Source of the DNA: Obrimoposthia wandeli
Lineage: Eukaryota
Reading direction: 5' to 3'
Assembly: GCA_977020255.1 (NCBI GenBank)
Contig: CDROCS010006174.1
Location: 62,001 to 126,000 of the forward strand
DNA: 64,000 nucleotides
Shown: positions 530 to 25,803 of the stretch, one piece after another
How positions within the stretch are numbered: position 1 is the stretch's first letter
Layout: every line of letters starts with the position of its first letter
Notes under the pieces: generated by a model
Told to the model about the DNA's origin: nothing
Seen by the model: the letters and a program-made list of their open reading frames with translations, nothing else
The model's database searches: none
Program-made: the position numbers and the translations under genes

Positions 530-665
530 AGGCTTTGAGATGAGTTCTCACTGGAGCTTTAAGCTCCCTAAAGGGTCGTTGGAGACTACAACGTTGATAG
601 GCAAGGTGTGGAAGTGCTGCGAGGCATTGAGCTAACTTGTACTAATTACCCGTGAGGCTTAACCA
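1..665 (+). rRNA. rrl: 23S rRNA, 3' portion (partial; begins before the window)
   Basis: Recognisable domain V/VI sequence: GGATAACAGGCTGATACCGCCCAAGAGTTCATATCGACGGCGGTGTTTGGCACCTCGATGTCGG, sarcin-ricin loop CTAGTACGAGAGGACCG, and 3' end CCGTGAGGCTTAACC. Confidence 0.98.
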
Positions 666-843
666 TACAACACCCAAGTAGTTTTACTGAAAAGTGACTA
701 TGAAGTGAATTGTAGGTAAGTTTGACTAACACTCGCAAGAGTGACACGTACATAAAGAATTGAATAAGAATTCGAACAAAAAACGTATTTATCATCACTG
801 AGACAAGGTCTCACTGATACAGCTTTCAAGATTGTACCCTTTT

Positions 844-960
844 TGTCTAGCGACAATAGCGACATAGTCCCACCTGATCCCATTCCGAACTCAGAAGTGA
901 AATGTGTTAGCGCCGATGGTAGTGTGGGAGTTCCCATGTGAGAGTAGGACATTGCTAGGC
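844..960 (+). rRNA. rrf: 5S rRNA
   Basis: TGTCTAGCGAC...CCCACCTGATCCCATTCCGAACTCAGAAGTGAAA...GCCGATGGTAGTGTGGG...GAGAGTAGG...GCTAGGC; the ends pair, and it follows the 23S gene. Confidence 0.97.
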
Positions 961-970
961 TTCTATTTAG

Positions 971-1001
971 AAAAGCCCGTTACGAAAGTGACGGGCTTTT
1001 T
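971..1001 (+). terminator. rrn operon terminator T1
   Basis: AAAAGCCCGTTAC-GAAA-GTGACGGGCTTTTT hairpin with T tract, 10 nt after the 5S gene. Confidence 0.9.
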
Positions 1002-1034
1002 GCTGTCTGTTGTATTAAAAAATACAGCAAAGGT

Positions 1035-1114
1035 AGCTATCAGTTTTGAGCTATCCGCTATCATTTTGAGGCATGAGAGACTTGCCGCTGACAGCTTTGA
1101 ACTTAAAAGTTTTC
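1035..1114. repeat. Imperfect heptamer tandem repeats forming loose inverted arms
   Basis: AGCTATC/AGTTTTG/AGCTATC/CGCTATC, a central GGCA..TGCC stem, then GCTGACA/GCTTTGA/ACTTAAA. Confidence 0.45.
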
Positions 1115-1133
1115 GTTTAGACTCAATTTATAG

Positions 1134-1162
1134 AAACCCATAGCTGATGCTAGGGGTTTTTT
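1134..1162 (+). terminator. rrn operon terminator T2
   Basis: AAACCCATAGC-TGAT-GCTAGGGGTTTTTT, one mismatch, followed by a T tract. Confidence 0.7.
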
Positions 1163-1646
1163 GCTTTCTGGCGTTTAAGAAACCACGTGCTTCATTGAAA
1201 GATTACTGACGTCGGTAATACAGCTTATGTGATTTAAATCATGCGAGATCAGGGCTTAACCCATTGCTATACATGTTCGTTCGAATATTTTAGCTAATAC
1301 TATGAGAGGTAGATCTGATAATTGATGTGGTGGTATCACTTATAAAAATATTATCGTCTTAACAAATATTTCAAAAAATTACTATGATGACACCTGATCG
1401 AGAGTGTATGTCACTAGTTTTTTGTATACGGCTACTATTCCACTTATGTTGTTCTTATTACATCCATATGCCGTATGTAATGAGAACAGTGAATATCTAA
1501 AAATGTTATCTATCTGATGTGTACTATAACTTGACTGCTATTTTTATTAAATACAACTGTGTGGTATTTGTATTGGTGAAAGGGTAGTAATAAAACGGAA
1601 CAAGATTAATATTCGTACTTGCTTGTTTAAATGATCTATTCAGGTG

Positions 1647-2512: not shown

Positions 2513-3700
2513 TTATAGATGAATTTTTCGTAATACTTGATTCGCTTTTTCAAATTGATTTTGATGTTCAAGTACCTGTGAAAAAGCCAGTAAATCGACA
2601 TTATCGTATTGCTTTATTTCTAGGTTCACTAAGCTGTTAAAGGCTTTTTCTGCTAACGGCCATTGCTGAGAACGAGTTGCAAAGTGAGCAACTAATGACA
2701 ACCAAAGTGCATTGTGTGGATCGTTGTGTAGGTGCTTTTGCGCTGCAGCGATTAATTTATCTGCTTGCATGATCGGTAATGACCTGACAGCTTTTAGTAG
2801 ATCAACCGCGACACCTTTTTTTATTATGGGTAATAACAATAGTGCTAAGGGTTCGTTAACTTGATTCTCTGCCAGTACTTGGCAATAGATCAGTACTATA
2901 TTTTCAGCTTGCCTAGTTTTCTTTGGTAGTTGCTGCCAATATTCCATTAGTACTGTCTGGTCATGTTGTTTAATTCTGCTATTAAAGGCGCCGTAAAATG
3001 CTTGTTGTTGCCATTCATTAACAGATTGTAATGAAATAGTTTTTTGTTTTTGGGCTGAACTTAGTAATTTAATGACATGGTCAAAACGTTTTTCAATTAA
3101 GCTCAATTCTATTTCTAAAGACAGTAGTCGTGCGTCATGACCAATATGTTTATGATGTTCATCAATGATATGTCGTGCCTGTGAATAATTTTGTTGACCG
3201 ATCAGTAATTTAATCTTAATTAAAACTGCTTCCAGACCCGCAGCTTTTAGTGTGTTCGTTTTCTGCTCGAGTAAGGCTAGGTAATGCTCGGTGTTTGGCT
3301 TTAACGCTTGTTTTTGTGCAGCATCTGCGGCAACAAGATAAGCGATATGCTCCAAAGAAGATGCTTCAGCAGATTTAGCTAATAAATGCTCTGCCTGTTT
3401 ATAATCACCCAAGACGTAAGCGGCGATACCTTTGTTGAGATCTTTAAGCGCTCTGCGACGACTAGCAAAGGCTATTTTATTCCAAGCTGCGAAACTAAAA
3501 TTAAGTCCACCACGGAAAAATTTAAGAGTGAGTAGTAACGTAATGAATACTAGCGTTAGCATAATAGTTGCGGTTACTACTGTTGATTCAATTGTTAGGT
3601 CACCCATGGCGATCAAAATATAACCTTTCTCTCCAATAAGTATTGGACTGATAGCGACAGCAGTAAGAAATAAAATTACTATTAATATAAGTCGTTTCAT
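2513..3700 (-). CDS. hemY: HemY-family heme biosynthesis-associated TPR membrane protein
   Basis: N-terminal TM plus KGYILIAMGDLTIESTV (HemY_N), TPR-like helices, last gene of hemCDXY. Confidence 0.9.
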   Translation of the reverse strand: MKRLILIVILFLTAVAISPILIGEKGYILIAMGDLTIESTVVTATIMLTLVFITLLLTLKFFRGGLNFSFAAWNKIAFASRRRALKDLNKGIAAYVLGDYKQAEHLLAKSAEASSLEHIAYLVAADAAQKQALKPNTEHYLALLEQKTNTLKAAGLEAVLIKIKLLIGQQNYSQARHIIDEHHKHIGHDARLLSLEIELSLIEKRFDHVIKLLSSAQKQKTISLQSVNEWQQQAFYGAFNSRIKQHDQTVLMEYWQQLPKKTRQAENIVLIYCQVLAENQVNEPLALLLLPIIKKGVAVDLLKAVRSLPIMQADKLIAAAQKHLHNDPHNALWLSLVAHFATRSQQWPLAEKAFNSLVNLEIKQYDNVDLLAFSQVLEHQNQFEKANQVLRKIHL

Positions 3701-7547: not shown

Positions 7548-8798
7548 TTGGACTTTTTCAATCGTAAACAACACTCATTATATGCCGAACAATGTCCTGT
7601 TACTGAGCTAGCAAAGGAATACGGCACACCTTTATATGTCTATTCTCGGGCTACCATTGAACGACATTGGCATGCTTTTGACCAAGCCGCAGGAGAGCGA
7701 CCTCATCTTGTTTGTTATGCGGTGAAAGCCAATAGTAACATTGCGGTATTAAATGTCATGGCCCGACTTGGCTCTGGTTTTGATATTGTCTCTAAAGGCG
7801 AGTTGATGCGAGTGATCGAAGCCGGTGGCGATCCTAAAAAAGTCGTATTTTCAGGGGTTGGGAAAACATCTGAAGAGATTGCTTATGCGCTTAATCTCGA
7901 TATTTATTGTTTTAATGTTGAATCATCGGCTGAATTAGAACGTATTCAATCTGTAGCTCAAGCGCTAAATAAAGTTGCCCCTATTTCATTGCGGGTTAAC
8001 CCTGATGTTGATGCCGGCACACATCCTTATATTTCAACGGGTTTAAAAGAAAATAAGTTTGGTATCAGTATCGAGCAAGCTCCTGAGTTATATCAATATG
8101 CGACAACGTTATCGCATATTAATATTCAGGGGGTCGATTGTCACATTGGTTCACAGTTAACCGAAGTTTTACCTTTTTTAGATGCGCTTGACCGAGTATT
8201 AAAGTTAGTAGATCAACTTGCTGAACAAGGCATAAAGTTATCCCATATTGATGTTGGCGGTGGTTTAGGTGTTTGTTACGATGATGAAAAGCCGCCACAC
8301 CCTAATGAGTATGCAAAAGCCATTGCAGAAAAATTAGTCGGTCGCGATCTAAAGCTTATCTATGAACCAGGCCGTGCCGTAATGGCAAATGCCGGTATTT
8401 TGGTTACCGAAGTTGAATATCTAAAAATTAGTGAAGAACGAAATTTTGCTATTGTTGATGCGGCAATGAATGATTTGATCAGACCAGCGTTATACCAAGC
8501 TTGGCAAGCGATCATTCCTGTTGAACAACGTGATGATGTTGTCAGCGAGCAATATGATGTCGTTGGTCCTATTTGTGAAACCGGTGACTTTTTGGGTAAA
8601 GAACGTATGCTTGCCATACGTGCGGGTGACTTACTCGCCGTACGCAGTGCTGGTGCTTATGGTTTTACTATGAGCTCTAATTACAATAGTCGCCCACGTG
8701 CTGCCGAAGTGATGGTAGACGGTGATGAAAGTTATTTGATCAGAGAACGTGAAGCTTTAAGCCAATTATGGCAAGGCGAAAGCTTATTACCTTTATAG
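7548..8798 (+). CDS. lysA: Diaminopimelate decarboxylase
   Basis: YAVKANSN (PLP lysine), SLRVNP, HIGSQ, EPGRA, GPICETGD, MSSNYNSRPR; TTG start with AGGAA RBS. Confidence 0.98.
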   Translation: MDFFNRKQHSLYAEQCPVTELAKEYGTPLYVYSRATIERHWHAFDQAAGERPHLVCYAVKANSNIAVLNVMARLGSGFDIVSKGELMRVIEAGGDPKKVVFSGVGKTSEEIAYALNLDIYCFNVESSAELERIQSVAQALNKVAPISLRVNPDVDAGTHPYISTGLKENKFGISIEQAPELYQYATTLSHINIQGVDCHIGSQLTEVLPFLDALDRVLKLVDQLAEQGIKLSHIDVGGGLGVCYDDEKPPHPNEYAKAIAEKLVGRDLKLIYEPGRAVMANAGILVTEVEYLKISEERNFAIVDAAMNDLIRPALYQAWQAIIPVEQRDDVVSEQYDVVGPICETGDFLGKERMLAIRAGDLLAVRSAGAYGFTMSSNYNSRPRAAEVMVDGDESYLIREREALSQLWQGESLLPL

Positions 8799-19569: not shown

Positions 19570-20052
19570 ATGGAAAAAATTTTAATCAGCAGTTGCTTTT
19601 TGGGTAATAAAGTTCGCTATGATGGCGGAGATAACTTAATTGAAAACGAGACAATAGAACGTTGGCGCAGAGAAAAGCGTTTAGTTGTTATTTGTCCTGA
19701 ATTGGCTGGCGGTTTATCGACACCGAGGGCACCAGCTGAAATCCAAATCAGTGATATGAGTATTGCCGTTAAAACTATTGTTGGTGAGGATGTTACAGCA
19801 GCATTTGAACGAGGTGCTCAACAGGCGTTACAGCTCTGTGAAAAATATAATATTCGCTATGCTTTATTAAAAGAGTCTAGTCCTTCGTGTGGTAGTTCAA
19901 GCGTATATAATGGTGAATTCAATCAACAAAAAATCCCTGGGCAGGGGATAACCACGGCGGCATTACGAGCAAACGGAGTTAACGTGTATTCGGAAAAAAA
20001 CTTATCTATCTTAATTAATGAATTTAGGTTGCTCGAGCTTGCGCAACATTAA
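19570..20052 (+). CDS. DUF523 / 2-thiouracil desulfurase family Fe-S protein
   Basis: SSCFLGNKVRYDG, ICPELAGGLSTPR, LKESSPSCG cysteine motifs. Confidence 0.88.
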   Translation: MEKILISSCFLGNKVRYDGGDNLIENETIERWRREKRLVVICPELAGGLSTPRAPAEIQISDMSIAVKTIVGEDVTAAFERGAQQALQLCEKYNIRYALLKESSPSCGSSSVYNGEFNQQKIPGQGITTAALRANGVNVYSEKNLSILINEFRLLELAQH

Positions 20053-21046
20053 CGTGATTAGTTAACGTTTTAGAAATATTACTGAGTAATTCACGAGTTT
20101 GACTGATGATGTTATTCGCACTCGTTGATACCACATAATCACTGACACCCATGCTCAGAGTTACAGGCGGTAATCTAGCTCCAGATTTACTACTGACAAA
20201 CCTTAACTTCTCTACACTTTGTCGGATTTTTTCGGCAATTTCACCTGCTACATCACGTTCAATATCAGGTAGCAAGATTAAAAATTCATCACCTGCTGAT
20301 CTTATAGGTAAGCCACTCTCACCAACATAGCTGCTAACTTTATTGGCAATTTTTGTTAAAAGCACATCACTAATTACTGGACCAAAACGATCATTCAAAC
20401 CAGAGAAGTGATCAATATTGACCACTATTGCTGCGATCTGCTTAGATGGATCGTCAGATAGCCACATCTCTAAATGCTTACTCATGGCTTTACGATTATA
20501 AAGGCCCGTTAGCGGGTCTAAATAAATTTCTTTTTTAACATCGTCTAATTCGCCACGCAGCGCATCAGTTGATTGTTGCGATAGGCGTAATTTTTCAGCT
20601 AGTTTTTCTTGTTCAAGTTTAAAGCGCTGTGTCGTTTGACGTATTTGTTTAATCGCGTTAATGACTTCACGTTTATCAGTAGACTTTAAACTCGAAATGT
20701 TATTGTCTAACTGGTTAACCATACGATTGGTGCAAACAGAAGAGTGTTCACTGTTAGTTTGTAAATCGAACAATACCTCATCGAGATCATCAATTAACTC
20801 GCCACGAAAAGCGCTCTGTCCTAAAACATATTGTTGATAGATCTCTTCTAAAAAAAAGTTATCGAGCTTTTTTACCGTAGCGAGTTGCTTTTCAATTGCG
20901 GTATTAAGTGCGGGTGAATTTTTGCTGAGATAATTGTAACTAACGGCATAATTAATTGGCGTCGCAGGGATATGCCATAACTGTAATTGTTTTATGGCGA
21001 CATGCATTTTTTGCTCAGCTTGCGCTATGGAATCATGGTATTTCAC
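20024..21046 (-). CDS. Cytoplasmic helical-domain plus degenerate GGDEF (AGDEF) protein
   Basis: DPLTGLYNRK, NIDHFSGLNDRFG, RSAGDEF; convergent 29-nt overlap with DUF523. Confidence 0.85.
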   Translation of the reverse strand: MKYHDSIAQAEQKMHVAIKQLQLWHIPATPINYAVSYNYLSKNSPALNTAIEKQLATVKKLDNFFLEEIYQQYVLGQSAFRGELIDDLDEVLFDLQTNSEHSSVCTNRMVNQLDNNISSLKSTDKREVINAIKQIRQTTQRFKLEQEKLAEKLRLSQQSTDALRGELDDVKKEIYLDPLTGLYNRKAMSKHLEMWLSDDPSKQIAAIVVNIDHFSGLNDRFGPVISDVLLTKIANKVSSYVGESGLPIRSAGDEFLILLPDIERDVAGEIAEKIRQSVEKLRFVSSKSGARLPPVTLSMGVSDYVVSTSANNIISQTRELLSNISKTLTNHVNVAQARAT

Positions 21047-21265
21047 TATCCAACCTTTACTCTATGGTATTTGATAATAATAGCTAGTGAACCATTCTGT
21101 AGTAATTTTAGCGAAAGTGCTATAGCGAAAAGTATTTAATACAGTAATAAAATGAATAAACAGAGCAAGCAATTAATGAAAAGTATTTCCTTTATAAATC
21201 TTTTTGTTTTGTTATGGTGTTCACTCTACAACGACCTTGTTTAAATTAACCTTTGAGATCTTGCC

Positions 21266-23038
21266 ATGAAAGTATTTTCAGTTGCTATGTGTGTTTTATT
21301 TTTTGTTATGGCTTGCCAATCTCCTCAACCTCAAGAGTTATCAATTAACAAGAAGCTCGAGCAGATTATTACCGATTATCAATATTATAAAGAGCATCAA
21401 AGTCCATTCAACCAAGATATTTCTGGTGATACTAATGCTCAACTTCCTGATTTATCACCTAGTAATCTTGAGCAACAGTATCTAGCTTTAAAGGCCACTT
21501 ATCAGCGCTTGGCAAAAATTGATGTTGACAAACTCAGTCAAGATGAAGCGATTAACCATGCTGTTTTGTCGTATACGATTAAAAATCAACTTGATAATTA
21601 TACTAATCACGAACATTACATGCCGTTAACTGCAGAGTCAGGTTTTCATGTTTGGATCAGTCGTATCAACGGTCAAGTCAGTTTTAAAACTGAGCAAGAT
21701 TATCGTGACTATTTAGCGAGGTTAACAGCCTTACCTAAGTACTTTTCTCAACAAATGTTTTGGATGGATAGAGGTATTGAAGAAGGGATCACTCAGCCAA
21801 AGATAGTCTTACAAGGTTTTGAAGAGTCTATTAAAGCATTTATAAAAACTGATGTGACTGCAAGCACTTATTATCAGCCATTTTCGAATATGCCAGCATA
21901 CTTTTCTGAGTCACTTAAATCACAATTAAAAGTTCAAGCAGTGGCTACCATTGCAGAGTTTGTTATACCAAGCTACCAGAAATATTATGATTATATGGTG
22001 CAGCGTTACCAACCTAATGCACGAGATAACATTGCTGCGAGTTCTTTACCTAATGGTGATGAATATTACTCAAATCGTTTGCAACATTATACAACACTGC
22101 CGATCTCAGTTGACGATGTGCATGAAATGGGCCTAGCTGAAGTCGCACGGATCAGACTTGAGATGAACGACATTATTACTCAATTAGCTTTTTCTGGAAG
22201 TTTTGCTGATTTTGTAAATTTTTTACGAACCGATAAACAATTTTATGCCACAAGCCCTGAAGGATTACTAAAAGAAGCTTCATTTATTGCCAAAAAAATG
22301 GATGCGCAATTACCTAAATTTTTTAAAGTGCTACCACGAACGCCTTATGGGGTTATTGAAGTGCCAGCAAATATTGCGCCTAAATACACGACAGGAAGAT
22401 ATTCAGGCCCTTCACGTGATGATCAGGCGGGTAACTATTGGGTCAATACATATCGCTTAGATCGTCGTCCCTTGTATGTACTAGAAGCGTTAACATTGCA
22501 CGAAGCGGTACCGGGGCATCACTTACAAGGCTCATTAGCGCGAGAAATGAAAAATGTGCCTAAATTTAGAAATAATACTTATATTTCGGCATTTGGCGAG
22601 GGGTGGGGACTTTACTCTGAATATTTAGGTATAGAGGCTGGCTTTTATCAGAATCCTTACAGTAACTTTGGCCGCCTAACTTATGAAATGTGGCGTGCTT
22701 GTCGCTTAGTGGTTGATACCGGAATGCACGCTAAGGGTTGGAGTCGAGAGCGAGCGATGAACTTTCTAGCAGATAACACTGCTTTATCTCTGCACAATGT
22801 GAAAACCGAAATCGATCGTTATATTTCTTGGCCAGGACAAGCCTTGTCTTACAAGATGGGTGAACTTACCATCAAAAAATTGCGTAATATGGCGGAAAAA
22901 GCATTGGGTGAAAATTTTGACTTAAGAGAATTTCATGATCAAGTATTAAAAAACGGTTCAATGCCCTTATCAATGCTTGAAACTATCATTATTGATTATG
23001 TAGAAAAGAAGAAAATCGTATTAAAAGAAGAAGAGTAA
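21266..23038 (+). CDS. DUF885 family lipoprotein (putative metallopeptidase-like)
   Basis: Lipobox-like VMAC, LTLHEAVPGHHLQ, AFGEGWGLYSE, RACRLVVDTGMH, PGQALSYKMG. Confidence 0.9.
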   Translation: MKVFSVAMCVLFFVMACQSPQPQELSINKKLEQIITDYQYYKEHQSPFNQDISGDTNAQLPDLSPSNLEQQYLALKATYQRLAKIDVDKLSQDEAINHAVLSYTIKNQLDNYTNHEHYMPLTAESGFHVWISRINGQVSFKTEQDYRDYLARLTALPKYFSQQMFWMDRGIEEGITQPKIVLQGFEESIKAFIKTDVTASTYYQPFSNMPAYFSESLKSQLKVQAVATIAEFVIPSYQKYYDYMVQRYQPNARDNIAASSLPNGDEYYSNRLQHYTTLPISVDDVHEMGLAEVARIRLEMNDIITQLAFSGSFADFVNFLRTDKQFYATSPEGLLKEASFIAKKMDAQLPKFFKVLPRTPYGVIEVPANIAPKYTTGRYSGPSRDDQAGNYWVNTYRLDRRPLYVLEALTLHEAVPGHHLQGSLAREMKNVPKFRNNTYISAFGEGWGLYSEYLGIEAGFYQNPYSNFGRLTYEMWRACRLVVDTGMHAKGWSRERAMNFLADNTALSLHNVKTEIDRYISWPGQALSYKMGELTIKKLRNMAEKALGENFDLREFHDQVLKNGSMPLSMLETIIIDYVEKKKIVLKEEE

Positions 23039-23111
23039 AGTAAAGGGGGAAGCAAAGATTACCTGATATTAAGAAAGTGAATCGATCAATAAAGTTAAGC
23101 CCCTACTGTAT

Positions 23112-23197
23112 CTAAATTTTGCAGTTCCGCTATCACAGCTTTCCCCTTAGAACGGTAACTTTGCGTCTCTAGCTTTAACTGGATTTGCCCTTATTGA
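23112..23197 (-). ncRNA. c-di-GMP-I (GEMM) riboswitch-like aptamer
   Basis: Minus strand reads AAUAA GGGCAAA UCCAGU UAAA GCUAGA GACGCAAA GUUACCG UUCUAAG GGGAAAG CUGUGAUAG CGGAACU GC. It is collinear with the Vibrio Vc2 aptamer as recalled (GGGCAAA-stem-GACGCAAA-P2-CUAA...UAGCGG), keeps positions equivalent to G20/A47/C92 and C44-G83, and has compensatory pairs in P2. Confidence 0.85.
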
Positions 23198-23326
23198 GCT
23201 TTAAAAACTCAGTACGAATTATGGGCAAAGCATTTCATTTCTAAACTATTTTTAATGTTATTGATGAGTAATCTACGTTAATATATTAAACCATAGCTGA
23301 ATTACCTATCTTGTTATTATGAGGCT

Positions 23327-23374
23327 ATATACCCAAACCACTTGAAGGCGCATCTTCAAGTGGTTTGGGCATAT
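23327..23374. repeat. 21-bp inverted repeat hairpin (REP/collapsed MITE-like)
   Basis: ATATACCCAAACCACTTGAAG-GCGCAT-CTTCAAGTGGTTTGGGCATAT, 20 of 21 pairs, TA-rich ends. Confidence 0.75.
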
Positions 23375-23448: not shown

Positions 23449-25278
23449 ATGAAACAAACGCTGTTTGGCATATTAATCAGTCTTTTCCTCATGCTCAGCA
23501 CTGATGCTCAAGCTTTTGTCAGCGATAAAAGCTATCGACAGCTACTCAATGGCTATTATCTTCAAGATAACGAGTCACTGCTCTCTCAAGATATTGTTGA
23601 CGCTGCGCAAGCGGTGGTTAGTAATCGCAATGACTACAGCCAGAAAGTGGTGGCACGAGCATTTTCTCTCTTATCAGATGTCGCTTTTAACCGGGGTAAC
23701 TTACTCGCCGCATTCCAATTTGCGCAATATGGAATCGAAATAGAAGAAACTGATGCACTTATACAGCTAGATTTATTACTAAAGCTTGCTAGGGGCTATT
23801 ATGCGCAAGGAAAATATATTCAATTACGTGATACCTCACAAAAGGCGGCTTGGTTAGCAGAGCAAGCAAAAAATATGGATTATCATTTGCAGGCGCTAGC
23901 TTATTCAGCCGTTGCCTATGCGTTAAGTGCGGATTACGCTTTAGCGATAACAGAGTTGATAAAAGTTGAGAATTTACTGAATCAAAATAGGCAAAGTGTT
24001 GATCAAATTACGTTATTAGAAATTATTGCTGAAGCTCACTTTAATCTAGCTGAATATGAAAATACCGTAGAGCTACTTAACCGCGTACTTAAGTTACGCA
24101 CTGATATGTCAAGAACACAAGGCATTGCAAGAACTTATCACTTAGTGGCCAAAGCTTACTATCAGTTACAACAATACGATGATGCCTTTAATATGTTTTG
24201 GCAGTCATTACAATTTTCTCAACAATATAAATTATATATTCGCAGTGCCTATGCTGAATTAGGTTTAGGGCAAGTGTTGTTTCAACAACAGCAATTCATC
24301 ATGGCAAAAGAACGACTACTCAGTGCCCAGAAAATATTTAACCAACACAACGTCGTACGAATGAAGTTATCGGCGCAAATAGCTTTAGCGAAAGTGATGT
24401 ATGCTTTAGATCAGGATGAGCAAGCTGATATCATTCTACTTTCTGCGCAGTCCTTAGCAGAAAAATTAGTGTTATCACCACAACAAATCGAGTTGTATTT
24501 GTTATTAACCGATTATTATCAAAGACAAAATAAACTTAAGTTGGCAATCAAAACGCAAAAACGTTATCTCAGTTTATATCAAGAGTTATACCCTAATGTG
24601 AATGTGAAAAACTCACTAGTCACAGCAGCTATCACAAGTAATAAGGTTAAAAAATTAGCCTTAAGCTTAGCTGAAAAAAGTGAGCTAAGTTTAGAATTCA
24701 GTGCGAAATATTATCGACAAAAAACCTTAATAATTTTACTTTCACTTGCTTTATTTTGCAGCTTGTTTTTTGCTATTCTTTGGCGTTTTAAGTTGTATCA
24801 TCAAAGGCTTCATCGGGGTTATGAAGCAGTTGAATTACTGAAAAATAAAGTGGCTCAACCGACTCAAACCAAACGTTGGTATCAACAGCAATACAAGATG
24901 GCAAGAAAATATCAATATAGCATTTCTGTTGCCTATTTAGTGATTGAAAATTGGCAAGAGCTTAGCTTTCATTTCAACACTAAAGTGCTAGCAGATGTCA
25001 GTAAAGCCTTAGCTATTATAATTAATGAAAATATTGATGAGGAAGATTTTGCTGGGGAGATTAGTGCTGGCGAATATCTGTTTTTGTGTCCACACCAAAC
25101 ACTAGAGCAAGTATTGAACAAGTTTACCGATATAGAGCAGGCAATAAAAACTAGATTTTTTGCTAACTTAGGCGACTATTCAGTTAAAGTCAGATTCTCA
25201 GTTGATTCACCAAGTATTCAAGATATCGATCCTTATGTTTTTCTTTCTCGCTTGAGTGAGAGCACCGAAGCCAAGTAG
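23449..25278 (+). CDS. Exported TPR-repeat domain, TM helix and degenerate GGDEF-like cytoplasmic domain
   Basis: Signal peptide, TPR-like helices, one TM (LIILLSLALFCSLFFAILW); C-terminal domain has GGDEF topology but reads EISAGEYLF. Confidence 0.75.
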   Translation: MKQTLFGILISLFLMLSTDAQAFVSDKSYRQLLNGYYLQDNESLLSQDIVDAAQAVVSNRNDYSQKVVARAFSLLSDVAFNRGNLLAAFQFAQYGIEIEETDALIQLDLLLKLARGYYAQGKYIQLRDTSQKAAWLAEQAKNMDYHLQALAYSAVAYALSADYALAITELIKVENLLNQNRQSVDQITLLEIIAEAHFNLAEYENTVELLNRVLKLRTDMSRTQGIARTYHLVAKAYYQLQQYDDAFNMFWQSLQFSQQYKLYIRSAYAELGLGQVLFQQQQFIMAKERLLSAQKIFNQHNVVRMKLSAQIALAKVMYALDQDEQADIILLSAQSLAEKLVLSPQQIELYLLLTDYYQRQNKLKLAIKTQKRYLSLYQELYPNVNVKNSLVTAAITSNKVKKLALSLAEKSELSLEFSAKYYRQKTLIILLSLALFCSLFFAILWRFKLYHQRLHRGYEAVELLKNKVAQPTQTKRWYQQQYKMARKYQYSISVAYLVIENWQELSFHFNTKVLADVSKALAIIINENIDEEDFAGEISAGEYLFLCPHQTLEQVLNKFTDIEQAIKTRFFANLGDYSVKVRFSVDSPSIQDIDPYVFLSRLSESTEAK

Positions 25279-25305
25279 CACCTTGGATAAATAACAGGTA
25301 ACACC

Positions 25306-25803
25306 ATGATTTTTGTTTTAACTATTATCGCTATGTTCGTCGCAGTCAGTATTTATTTTTTCTTTAAAGCTGAAAATTTACAACGTGAAATTATTTTGAT
25401 GAAAAGAGATGTTTCAGCCACTAAAAAAGAGAATAAAAGCTATGTTGAGTTAATGGCTATTATTGCTCAGCGCTACGAAGATATTTCAAAGCAACGTTTT
25501 ATTGAATTAAGAGCCGCAGCTACGTCAGCTGAAGAGACTGAAAAGTTTGATATTATAGCGCCAATAATAAACAATTACGGCGCCATTTTTAATGGCACCC
25601 TTAAGGGAAAAGGCAAGTTGCAATCGACGGTGAAGAAGATTTATGAAGGCCACCAAAAGGGGACTTTTAAGATCTTAAGTAACTATATTACTCAGGCAGA
25701 TAAAGAAATAAAAAGAGCCTGGTCGAGTAATAATCTTAATGGTTTTATTTTACTGGTTGAAGCTTTTTTACAAGTGAAAAAAGCTAAGAAAAAAGACAAC
25801 TAA
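25306..25803 (+). CDS. Hypothetical single-TM, coiled-coil protein
   Basis: 165-aa ORF, N-terminal hydrophobic helix, ACAGG RBS, 27 nt after the upstream gene. Confidence 0.75.
   Translation: MIFVLTIIAMFVAVSIYFFFKAENLQREIILMKRDVSATKKENKSYVELMAIIAQRYEDISKQRFIELRAAATSAEETEKFDIIAPIINNYGAIFNGTLKGKGKLQSTVKKIYEGHQKGTFKILSNYITQADKEIKRAWSSNNLNGFILLVEAFLQVKKAKKKDN

Follow-up and report, generated by a model that had tools for sequence, protein, structure and literature searches.

Which gene, if any, does a riboswitch control when no sense gene lies behind it? This question is raised by a 64,000-nt stretch of DNA (hereafter the window; NCBI GenBank assembly GCA_977020255.1, recorded under Obrimoposthia wandeli, contig CDROCS010006174.1, positions 62,001 to 126,000 of the forward strand), in which a riboswitch for cyclic di-guanosine monophosphate (c-di-GMP) lies on the minus strand and points into the 3' end of a DUF885 gene carried by the plus strand. 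Known riboswitches of this kind act as leaders, each controlling the gene it precedes. We consider it rather probable that the window's element belongs instead to a c-di-GMP-I riboswitch RNA, about 175-190 nt long, which is conserved in Colwelliaceae and transcribed independently, and that it is not a leader deprived of its gene.

The aptamer and the RNA unit around it

The whole 64-kb window was compared with Rfam using cmscan, and a single riboswitch match was obtained. It corresponds to RF01051 (c-di-GMP-I, GEMM-I) at 23199-23117 on the minus strand, with 60.9 bits, an E value of 1.9e-9 and alignment to the full model (1-87), a score that clears the gathering threshold of 35 bits by 26 bits. 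RF01051 is the best member of clan CL00126 at the aptamer, two lower-scoring overlapping matches from this clan having been dropped over the window as a whole. The cmscan alignment contains the conserved blocks GGCAAA, GACGCAAAG, CUAA and AGC, and the junction blocks that contact the ligand (GGCAAA, GACGCAAAG and AGC...GC) align to upper-case positions of the Rfam consensus. The sequence-only reading of this DNA, which had proposed a genuine GEMM-I aptamer on the minus strand, a P2 pairing of GUUACCG with CGGAACU and a search with RF01051 as a check, is borne out by this single minus-strand match above threshold and by the same P2 pairing in the alignment. It had also described an aptamer without a sense gene behind it, followed by the DUF885 stop codon about 80 nt further on. 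We measured 79 nt between the 3' end of the aptamer and this stop codon, located at 23036-23038, and no minus-strand open reading frame (ORF) of at least 20 amino acids was found between the aptamer and DUF885. A position in the 5' untranslated region of a controlled gene therefore does not apply in the window; it is true only for the 24 relatives, described below, that have a GGDEF gene behind the RNA.

Comparison with relatives shows that the aptamer is part of a conserved unit of about 210 nt, made up from 5' to 3' of a near-consensus sigma-70 promoter, a 5' hairpin, the aptamer, a hairpin called P4 whose loop is UAGUGGGGGCU, a further, small hairpin, a strand complementary to the aptamer core and a tail rich in pyrimidines. 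The parts of this unit in the window are:

23240..23245, minus strand: -35-like hexamer TTTAGA, from a promoter scan; invariant TTTACA in relatives
23218..23223, minus strand: -10-like hexamer CATAAT after a 16-nt spacer, from the same scan; invariant TATAAT and a 17-nt spacer in relatives
23196..23210, minus strand: 5' hairpin P0, GAGUUUUUAAAGCUC, directly before the aptamer; 91% of cells paired in 33 sequences, mostly with one-sided changes
23117..23199, minus strand: c-di-GMP-I (GEMM-I) aptamer, RF01051 at 60.9 bits, with a UAAA tetraloop and three helix mismatches
23090..23116, minus strand: post-aptamer hairpin P4 with a G-rich loop; the window has a degraded 3' arm and CAGUAGGGGCU as the loop
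23074..23085, minus strand: position of the small hairpin P5; in the window 154:164 and 156:161 are mismatched and 155:162 is a G-U wobble
23052..23065, minus strand: anti-aptamer strand CAGGUAAUCUUUGC, which complements GCAAAGUUACCG of the aptamer at 23153-23164
23040..23051, minus strand: tail UUCCCCCUUUAC, rich in pyrimidines and able to pair with AAUAAGGG, the flank on the 5' side of the aptamer

The promoter is the part of the unit that speaks most directly to independence. In the relatives, first in 9 and then in 33 of them, it reads TTTACA-N17-TATAAT without exception, and we infer a start of the RNA near 23211 in the window (a predicted position). The idea that the riboswitch forms an RNA on its own, already present in the sequence-only reading, thus gains a promoter-like site that belongs to the element itself.

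The structured parts are conserved as pairs. Among 33 orthologues, all six P1b pairs and two P2 pairs of the aptamer have changed on both sides, and 97% of the cells are paired. P4 has the form UUUAGAUA / invariant loop UAGUGGGGGCU / UAUCUAAA in the relatives, and its pair 129:141 is A-U in 19 and G-C in 14 sequences of the 33-sequence alignment, while three of the four P5 pairs covary across the family. The anti-aptamer strand of the family, CGGUAUACUUUGCGU, is the complement of the aptamer core ACGCAAAGUUACCG; RNAalifold chose this helix unaided, with 92.9% of the cells paired in the 33 sequences and the pair 54:180 found as UA in 12, AU in 8 and UG in 6 of them. The 5' flank and the tail would close the structure through a further helix, for which matched variants were observed (GAAAAGG with CCUUUUC, AACAAAG with CUUUGUU). 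Conservation of the element ends at the tail, and beyond it, inside DUF885, only ordinary coding constraint is seen. The minus strand carries no terminator of the stem-loop-plus-U-run type; what it does carry is the anti-aptamer helix and, after it, a tract rich in pyrimidines and U.

The two helices that share the aptamer core were then compared as predicted folds. In all 33 sequences the unconstrained fold prefers the anti-aptamer helix: the anti-aptamer strand is unpaired with a mean probability of 0.11, which rises to 0.45 when the aptamer is forced. Predicted energies range from -39 to -74 kcal/mol without constraint and from -27 to -51 kcal/mol with the aptamer forced, and the minimum-energy folds of four sequences are rods in which the 3' domain is paired with the 5' half of the aptamer. 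As modelled, the anti-aptamer structure is thus a two-state switch.

Could the element nevertheless be the ordinary 5' leader of a small minus-strand protein gene that had been missed? The G-rich loop GUGGGGG resembles a ribosome-binding site. However, in addition to the lack of a minus-strand ORF mentioned above, no conserved start codon follows the loop, and the sole open frames, when set against the invariant CUUUGCG, are not in the same register in the two main clades. We regard such a leader as very improbable.

Neighbours of the RNA across Colwelliaceae

Three genes of the window are needed to follow the element through its relatives:

21266..23038, plus strand: DUF885 gene, 590 amino acids (Pfam PF05960, E 1e-170), the convergent neighbour
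20024..21046, minus strand: gene with a GGDEF (diguanylate cyclase) domain (Pfam PF00990), on the same strand as the RNA and beyond DUF885
23449..25278, plus strand: TPR/membrane protein gene, 609 amino acids (Pfam TPR_12), divergent from the RNA promoter

A search with the DUF885 protein gave 38 Colwelliaceae loci from Colwellia, Cognaticolwellia and Thalassotalea, with 61-83% identity, hence 39 loci with the window; being anchored on DUF885, this set is a biased sample of the contexts in which the RNA occurs. Eight of the ten relatives scanned have an RF01051 match in the same position and orientation, scoring 73-85 bits. With an nhmmer profile of the whole intergenic element, the full-length unit from promoter to tail was recovered in 33 of the 39 loci (window included), a remnant of the element in L008, L009 and L013, and no match in L004, L005 and L007. 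Most relatives share the convergent DUF885 arrangement, which answers the synteny check that the sequence-only reading had proposed. The gap between the tail and the DUF885 stop is mostly 3-50 nt and reaches 89-316 nt in Thalassotalea, where it is filled with repeats. The RNA is intact in loci devoid of the GGDEF gene alone (L012, L025) and in loci devoid of both the GGDEF and TPR genes (L034, L035, L039). A linkage of the element to the divergent TPR gene was set aside, since the RNA persists without this gene.

Short tandem repeats have expanded after the tail in some of these loci. L019 (~7776-7829) carries four copies of the tail motif CUUCCUUUAU, and L035 and L039 have Thalassotalea repeats of the TTCTCGT type between the tail and the DUF885 stop.

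Metagenome contigs were then searched with a pattern derived from the RNA itself. This census gave 120 loci, 107 with enough flanking sequence and 13 cut by contig ends. Seventy-five of the 107 RNA-anchored copies converge on DUF885. Another 24 have no DUF885; 150-270 nt downstream of them, in the same direction, comes an orthologue of the GGDEF gene seen in the window. Five copies converge on a thiouracil desulfurase gene, the entire GGDEF/DUF885/TPR block being missing, and the remaining three have other neighbours (an unrelated same-strand ORF of 253 amino acids, a convergent oligoribonuclease-like ORF, and nothing recognisable). The tie of the RNA to DUF885 is thus not constant, since 32 of the 107 copies occur without it. 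Ten copies from the alternative contexts scored 74-84 bits with RF01051. Intact copies with such scores are found in at least five lineages without DUF885, and the unit is kept in at least six downstream contexts. Since retention of the RNA depends on no one neighbour, an autonomous function is favoured over a dedicated antisense role at DUF885.

The oligoribonuclease-like case is a single one: in L086 the element (1644-1438, minus strand) converges on the ORF at 616-1194 (plus strand). The oligoribonuclease Orn degrades pGpG, a breakdown product of c-di-GMP. The pairing seen in L086 may be a coincidence.

Which of these arrangements came first was addressed with a tree of the GGDEF proteins, built with FastTree only and midpoint rooted, on which the DUF885-less loci occur in at least five places, some of them nested in DUF885-bearing clades. 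Because of this scattering, the sequences are most simply explained by an ancestral convergent DUF885 arrangement from which DUF885 was lost repeatedly with the RNA retained. Two other histories were considered and put aside. A deletion scar at a site where all relatives have a sense gene disagrees with the convergent DUF885 shared by most of them and with the scatter of the DUF885-less loci on the tree. A recent insertion of DUF885 between the riboswitch and GGDEF is not favoured, as DUF885 would have had to enter one and the same site several times, each time in the same direction.

Traces of the element in RNA come from relatives. The element of L023, a central relative, occurs in many metatranscriptome runs, and contigs from four runs, each belonging to a different study, cover related copies of the element when compared with the L023 locus. 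In one run the contig depths over the element exceed those of the contigs coding for DUF885, one contig links the 3' coding sequence of DUF885 to the aptamer, and two contigs end about 10 nt past the predicted start site. These contigs are strandless and their ends may be assembly branch points, so they show presence in RNA libraries only; moreover, the sole public run with the sequence of the window's own genome looks like DNA and not like RNA. Both points weigh against an independently transcribed RNA, and so do several others. The metagenome search pattern required the P4 loop, so the census covers only copies with that platform. In every context checked, a canonical intrinsic terminator after the tail was absent. 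Covariation of the closing helix is weak: a tail pairs with its own 5' flank better than with the flanks of others by -0.84 kcal/mol, its own partner being the better one in 69 of 107 copies. A trans target was not found, the only candidate being the GGDEF initiation region discussed below. Finally, most copies converge on DUF885 in what looks like the ancestral arrangement, and a cis-antisense effect is possible wherever DUF885 is present.

This last point leads to the explanation put forward in the sequence-only reading, an antisense effect on the DUF885 mRNA. In its strict form, the element would be a dedicated cis-antisense regulator of DUF885, c-di-GMP gating transcription into the 3' end of the gene, and the effect would be exerted by interference or by an RNA duplex. 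The geometry on which this explanation was built is conserved, with an own promoter downstream of and opposite to DUF885, a tail that mostly ends 3-50 nt from the stop, no terminator separating the two, and the DUF885 convergence of the majority of the RNA-anchored metagenome copies in an arrangement that looks ancestral. The contig joining the 3' coding sequence of DUF885 to the aptamer is in line with it, and the arrangement has been catalogued as a candidate antisense-acting riboswitch (Serrano-Gutierrez and Merino 2023, PLoS One, PMC9943018). What it does not accommodate are the intact copies in at least five independent lineages without DUF885, one of them a 12-member clade. In addition, the gap grows to 89-316 nt of repeats in Thalassotalea, conservation stops at the tail with only ordinary coding constraint inside DUF885, and the supporting observations consist of geometry and strandless contigs. 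We therefore regard a dedicated cis-antisense regulator as rather unlikely, and a DUF885-specific mechanism is not favoured. The broader class in which the sequence-only reading had placed the element, a riboswitch-gated non-coding RNA, was nonetheless the right one.

Possible outputs of the RNA and the state of the window's copy

For the independent RNA that we favour, the two predicted folds lend themselves to a simple scheme. The ligand-free RNA would be a closed rod with its 3' domain paired to the 5' half of the aptamer. Binding of c-di-GMP would lock the aptamer and free about 45 nt of the 3' domain, so that the output would be the 3' domain in its freed or sequestered state. One option is that this domain sets the end of transcription, so that either a short RNA is made or transcription continues into the sequence beyond, which in the window would be antisense to the 3' end of DUF885. 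Alternatively, it could expose a pairing surface for targets in trans. A c-di-GMP riboswitch kept for a long time as a unit with its own promoter, whatever lies behind it, would suggest that it does something else than control the adjacent gene, possibly as a signal-gated small RNA or a transcript whose length or stability is set by the ligand. The family offers natural experiments on this question, with copies that have or lack DUF885, GGDEF and TPR genes and a graded series from intact copies to pseudogenes, and the question is testable in cultivable Colwellia strains.

The one candidate target in trans is the GGDEF gene. The freed 3' domain would pair with its initiation region, acting in trans across DUF885 and in cis where the RNA stands directly upstream, as in the 24 loci where the GGDEF orthologue follows the RNA on the same strand, 150-270 nt further on. 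Duplexes predicted with the initiation region of GGDEF have a mean energy of -20.6 kcal/mol, as compared with -11.5 to -13.6 kcal/mol for seven other genes of the locus. In the window the duplex reaches -26.0 kcal/mol (RNA 23068-23035 with 21065-21031), which ranks second of 67 initiation regions and beats all 100 shuffles (z -3.7), and in L023 it reaches -46 kcal/mol over about 50 nt (z -3.9). However, against shuffled GGDEF regions the family-wide z is only -0.5, with 10% of the loci below -2, so the signal seems to be mostly a matter of purine-rich composition. Pairing within a clade is also no better than pairing between clades, the RNA persists in loci without GGDEF, and GGDEF keeps a conserved upstream block of its own. 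Regulation of the GGDEF gene by the element is thus quite unlikely in our opinion, and family-wide specific pairing with the GGDEF initiation region, strong against other genes and mostly gone against shuffles, was rejected as a general result and kept as a minority reading. We give similarly small credence to the wider version of the idea, a c-di-GMP-gated small RNA whose freed 3' domain would pair in trans with purine-rich initiation regions, notably that of GGDEF, in an RNA-only feedback on c-di-GMP synthesis. If true, such a feedback loop would survive the separation of the two genes by DUF885.

The best duplex of the window is formed by another gene. The pyrimidine tail of the RNA pairs at -27.5 kcal/mol with the initiation region GAGCAGGAAGGGGGCG...AUG of a 395-amino-acid ORF at 2513-3700 on the minus strand, which may reflect a G-rich ribosome-binding site.

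The upstream block of GGDEF, TAGCACTTT...TTACTAGAAAATGGTC (about 21100-21135 of the window, minus strand), is kept with and without DUF885, even in distant relatives; written out, it reads TAGCACTTT...TTACTA(G/C)A(A/G)AATGGT. It is probably the promoter or operator of GGDEF. Because this block is kept in both arrangements, GGDEF appears to be a separate transcription unit. A long antisense transcript that would serve as the GGDEF mRNA, in the manner of an excludon, is not favoured, given this block and the persistence of the RNA in loci without GGDEF.

Is the copy found in the window still a working member of the family? The window falls in the Cognaticolwellia clade, and its copy carries nine private substitutions at sites that are at least 95% conserved in the other 32 sequences. 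Ten other full copies of this clade carry 0-4 such changes, with end branches of 0.09-0.32 as compared with 0.22 for the window. The RF01051 score of the window is the lowest of all those scored (60.9 versus 73-85 bits). The mismatches C.A, U.U and G.G break three helix pairs of the aptamer; the pairs broken are 30:41, 59:106 and 67:99, and the relatives keep them, often by compensatory changes. The P1b tetraloop is UAAA in the window and GAAA in all 32 aligned relatives; the window thus lacks the GNRA tetraloop of the type-1 architecture, in which the first hairpin docks into a receptor in the second, a feature that defines a subtype and not the whole c-di-GMP-I family. Further changes are a G-to-A substitution in the invariant P4 loop, CUUUGCGUG changed to CUUUGCUUC, and the departure of both promoter hexamers from the invariant consensus. 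The window's copy is the most damaged of the full-length copies; it is probably weakened, and it may be moving toward the pseudogene state of its sister lineages.

These sister lineages give weight to another explanation, namely that the window's copy is a non-functional remnant of a family that works elsewhere, selection having lapsed here. At least three independent losses or pseudogenes have occurred within the Cognaticolwellia clade (the clade of L005, L007, L008 and L009; L004; L013), a series of pseudogenes being seen in L005, L007, L008, L009 and L013, and the private changes, the broken aptamer pairs, the tetraloop change, the degraded P4 and P5, the shifted promoter hexamers and the low score listed above all fit with such a fate. 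On the other side, the score is still 26 bits over the gathering threshold, and the ligand-pocket blocks, an 11-pair anti-aptamer strand and a usable promoter remain. Some change is also tolerated in the neighbourhood, as L012 has four changes at conserved sites and L006, L011 and L012 share GCA for GCC at the 3' end of the aptamer. Mutants of the tetraloop-receptor contact in Vc2 have a lowered affinity and keep binding. We judge a remnant to be possible, on the doubtful side. The relic alternative of the sequence-only reading, a riboswitch whose target gene had been deleted, does not hold for the family, in which the convergent arrangement is conserved and looks ancestral; for the window's copy alone it holds in part, as constraint seems to be relaxed there.

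As for the proteins encoded around the element, the DUF885 product carries a HEAVPGHH motif and is a probable secreted or lipoprotein metallopeptidase-like protein, the lipoprotein reading being based on the N-terminal sequence only. The 609-amino-acid TPR protein combines TPR repeats at its N-terminus with a membrane segment and a C-terminal domain, and is followed by an ORF of 165 amino acids, the pair spanning 23449-25803 on the plus strand. This pair adjoins the RNA in most loci. Pfam gave nothing significant for the C-terminus of the TPR protein or for the 165-amino-acid ORF. The layout of TPR repeats followed by a C-terminal domain resembles that of RcbA from the rcbAB c-di-GMP module of Vibrio vulnificus (PMC12282931), a likeness of layout alone. 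Between the RNA promoter and the TPR gene, at 23332-23369, two perfectly matched 16-bp arms (CCCAAACCACTTGAAG / CTTCAAGTGGTTTGGG) form an inverted repeat around a 6-nt loop. The repeat is followed by no U-run on either strand and is missing from the aligned relatives, and it could be an insulator or an insertion resembling a repetitive extragenic palindrome (REP). At the other end, positions 1-960 of the window (plus strand) hold the 3' end of a 23S rRNA gene (1-666) and a 5S rRNA gene (846-960).

Comparison with known riboswitch RNAs

The arrangement of DUF885 with a c-di-GMP-I riboswitch is already catalogued computationally. Serrano-Gutierrez and Merino (PMC9943018) reported that a c-di-GMP-I riboswitch faces, on the opposite strand, the 3' end of the COG4805/DUF885 gene in Colwellia psychrerythraea 34H (CPS_4378), Colwellia sp. 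PAMC 21821 (A3Q33_07785, their Fig 3C), MT41, Arc7-D and Arc7-635, as well as in Cognaticolwellia beringensis, Thalassotalea sp. HSM 43 and PS06, and Pseudoalteromonas tunicata D2. These cases belong to the same locus family as the window's element. The catalogue files them under 'uncharacterized ORFs', presumes DUF885 as the target and gives no mechanism; the promoter, the expression platform, the copies without DUF885 and the decayed copies are described here and not in PMC9943018.

Two antisense riboswitches that have been shown experimentally are summarised in the same paper (PMC9943018), the S-box opposite ubiG-mccBA in Clostridium acetobutylicum and the B12 riboswitch of AspocR opposite pocR in Listeria monocytogenes. 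Like the window's element, each is a riboswitch with its own promoter, located downstream of a gene and on the opposite strand, and each places transcription antisense into that gene under the control of a ligand. The resemblance ends with the downstream part of the RNA and its partner: the S-box and B12 switches have recognisable terminators and a fixed partner gene, whereas the Colwelliaceae RNA is without a visible canonical terminator and outlives the loss of its partner gene.

Other riboswitches determine which form, or what length, a non-coding RNA takes, and this RNA then acts at a distance from the locus it comes from, as is the case for SreA and SreB (S-adenosylmethionine, Listeria) and for EutX and Rli55 (B12, Enterococcus and Listeria). 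SreA and SreB are terminated leaders of real operons, and EutX/Rli55 sequesters a protein.

Besides the two antisense riboswitches, the system nearest in its working is that of Vibrio cholerae, in which the abundance of Vc2-containing small RNAs depends on c-di-GMP and their 3' ends do not come from a classical terminator (Pursley and Waters 2019, bioRxiv 10.1101/617340). As in the window's element, a c-di-GMP-I aptamer is found within a non-coding RNA. The Vc2 small RNA carries its aptamer at the 3' end, and this aptamer doubles as the leader of tfoY, whereas the aptamer of the Colwelliaceae RNA stands at the 5' end, with a conserved domain of about 95 nt after it and, in the window, no sense gene behind it. 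What the present family adds to PMC9943018 and 10.1101/617340 is a conserved promoter, a platform built on an anti-aptamer strand, and an RNA that persists whichever of several unrelated contexts lies downstream.

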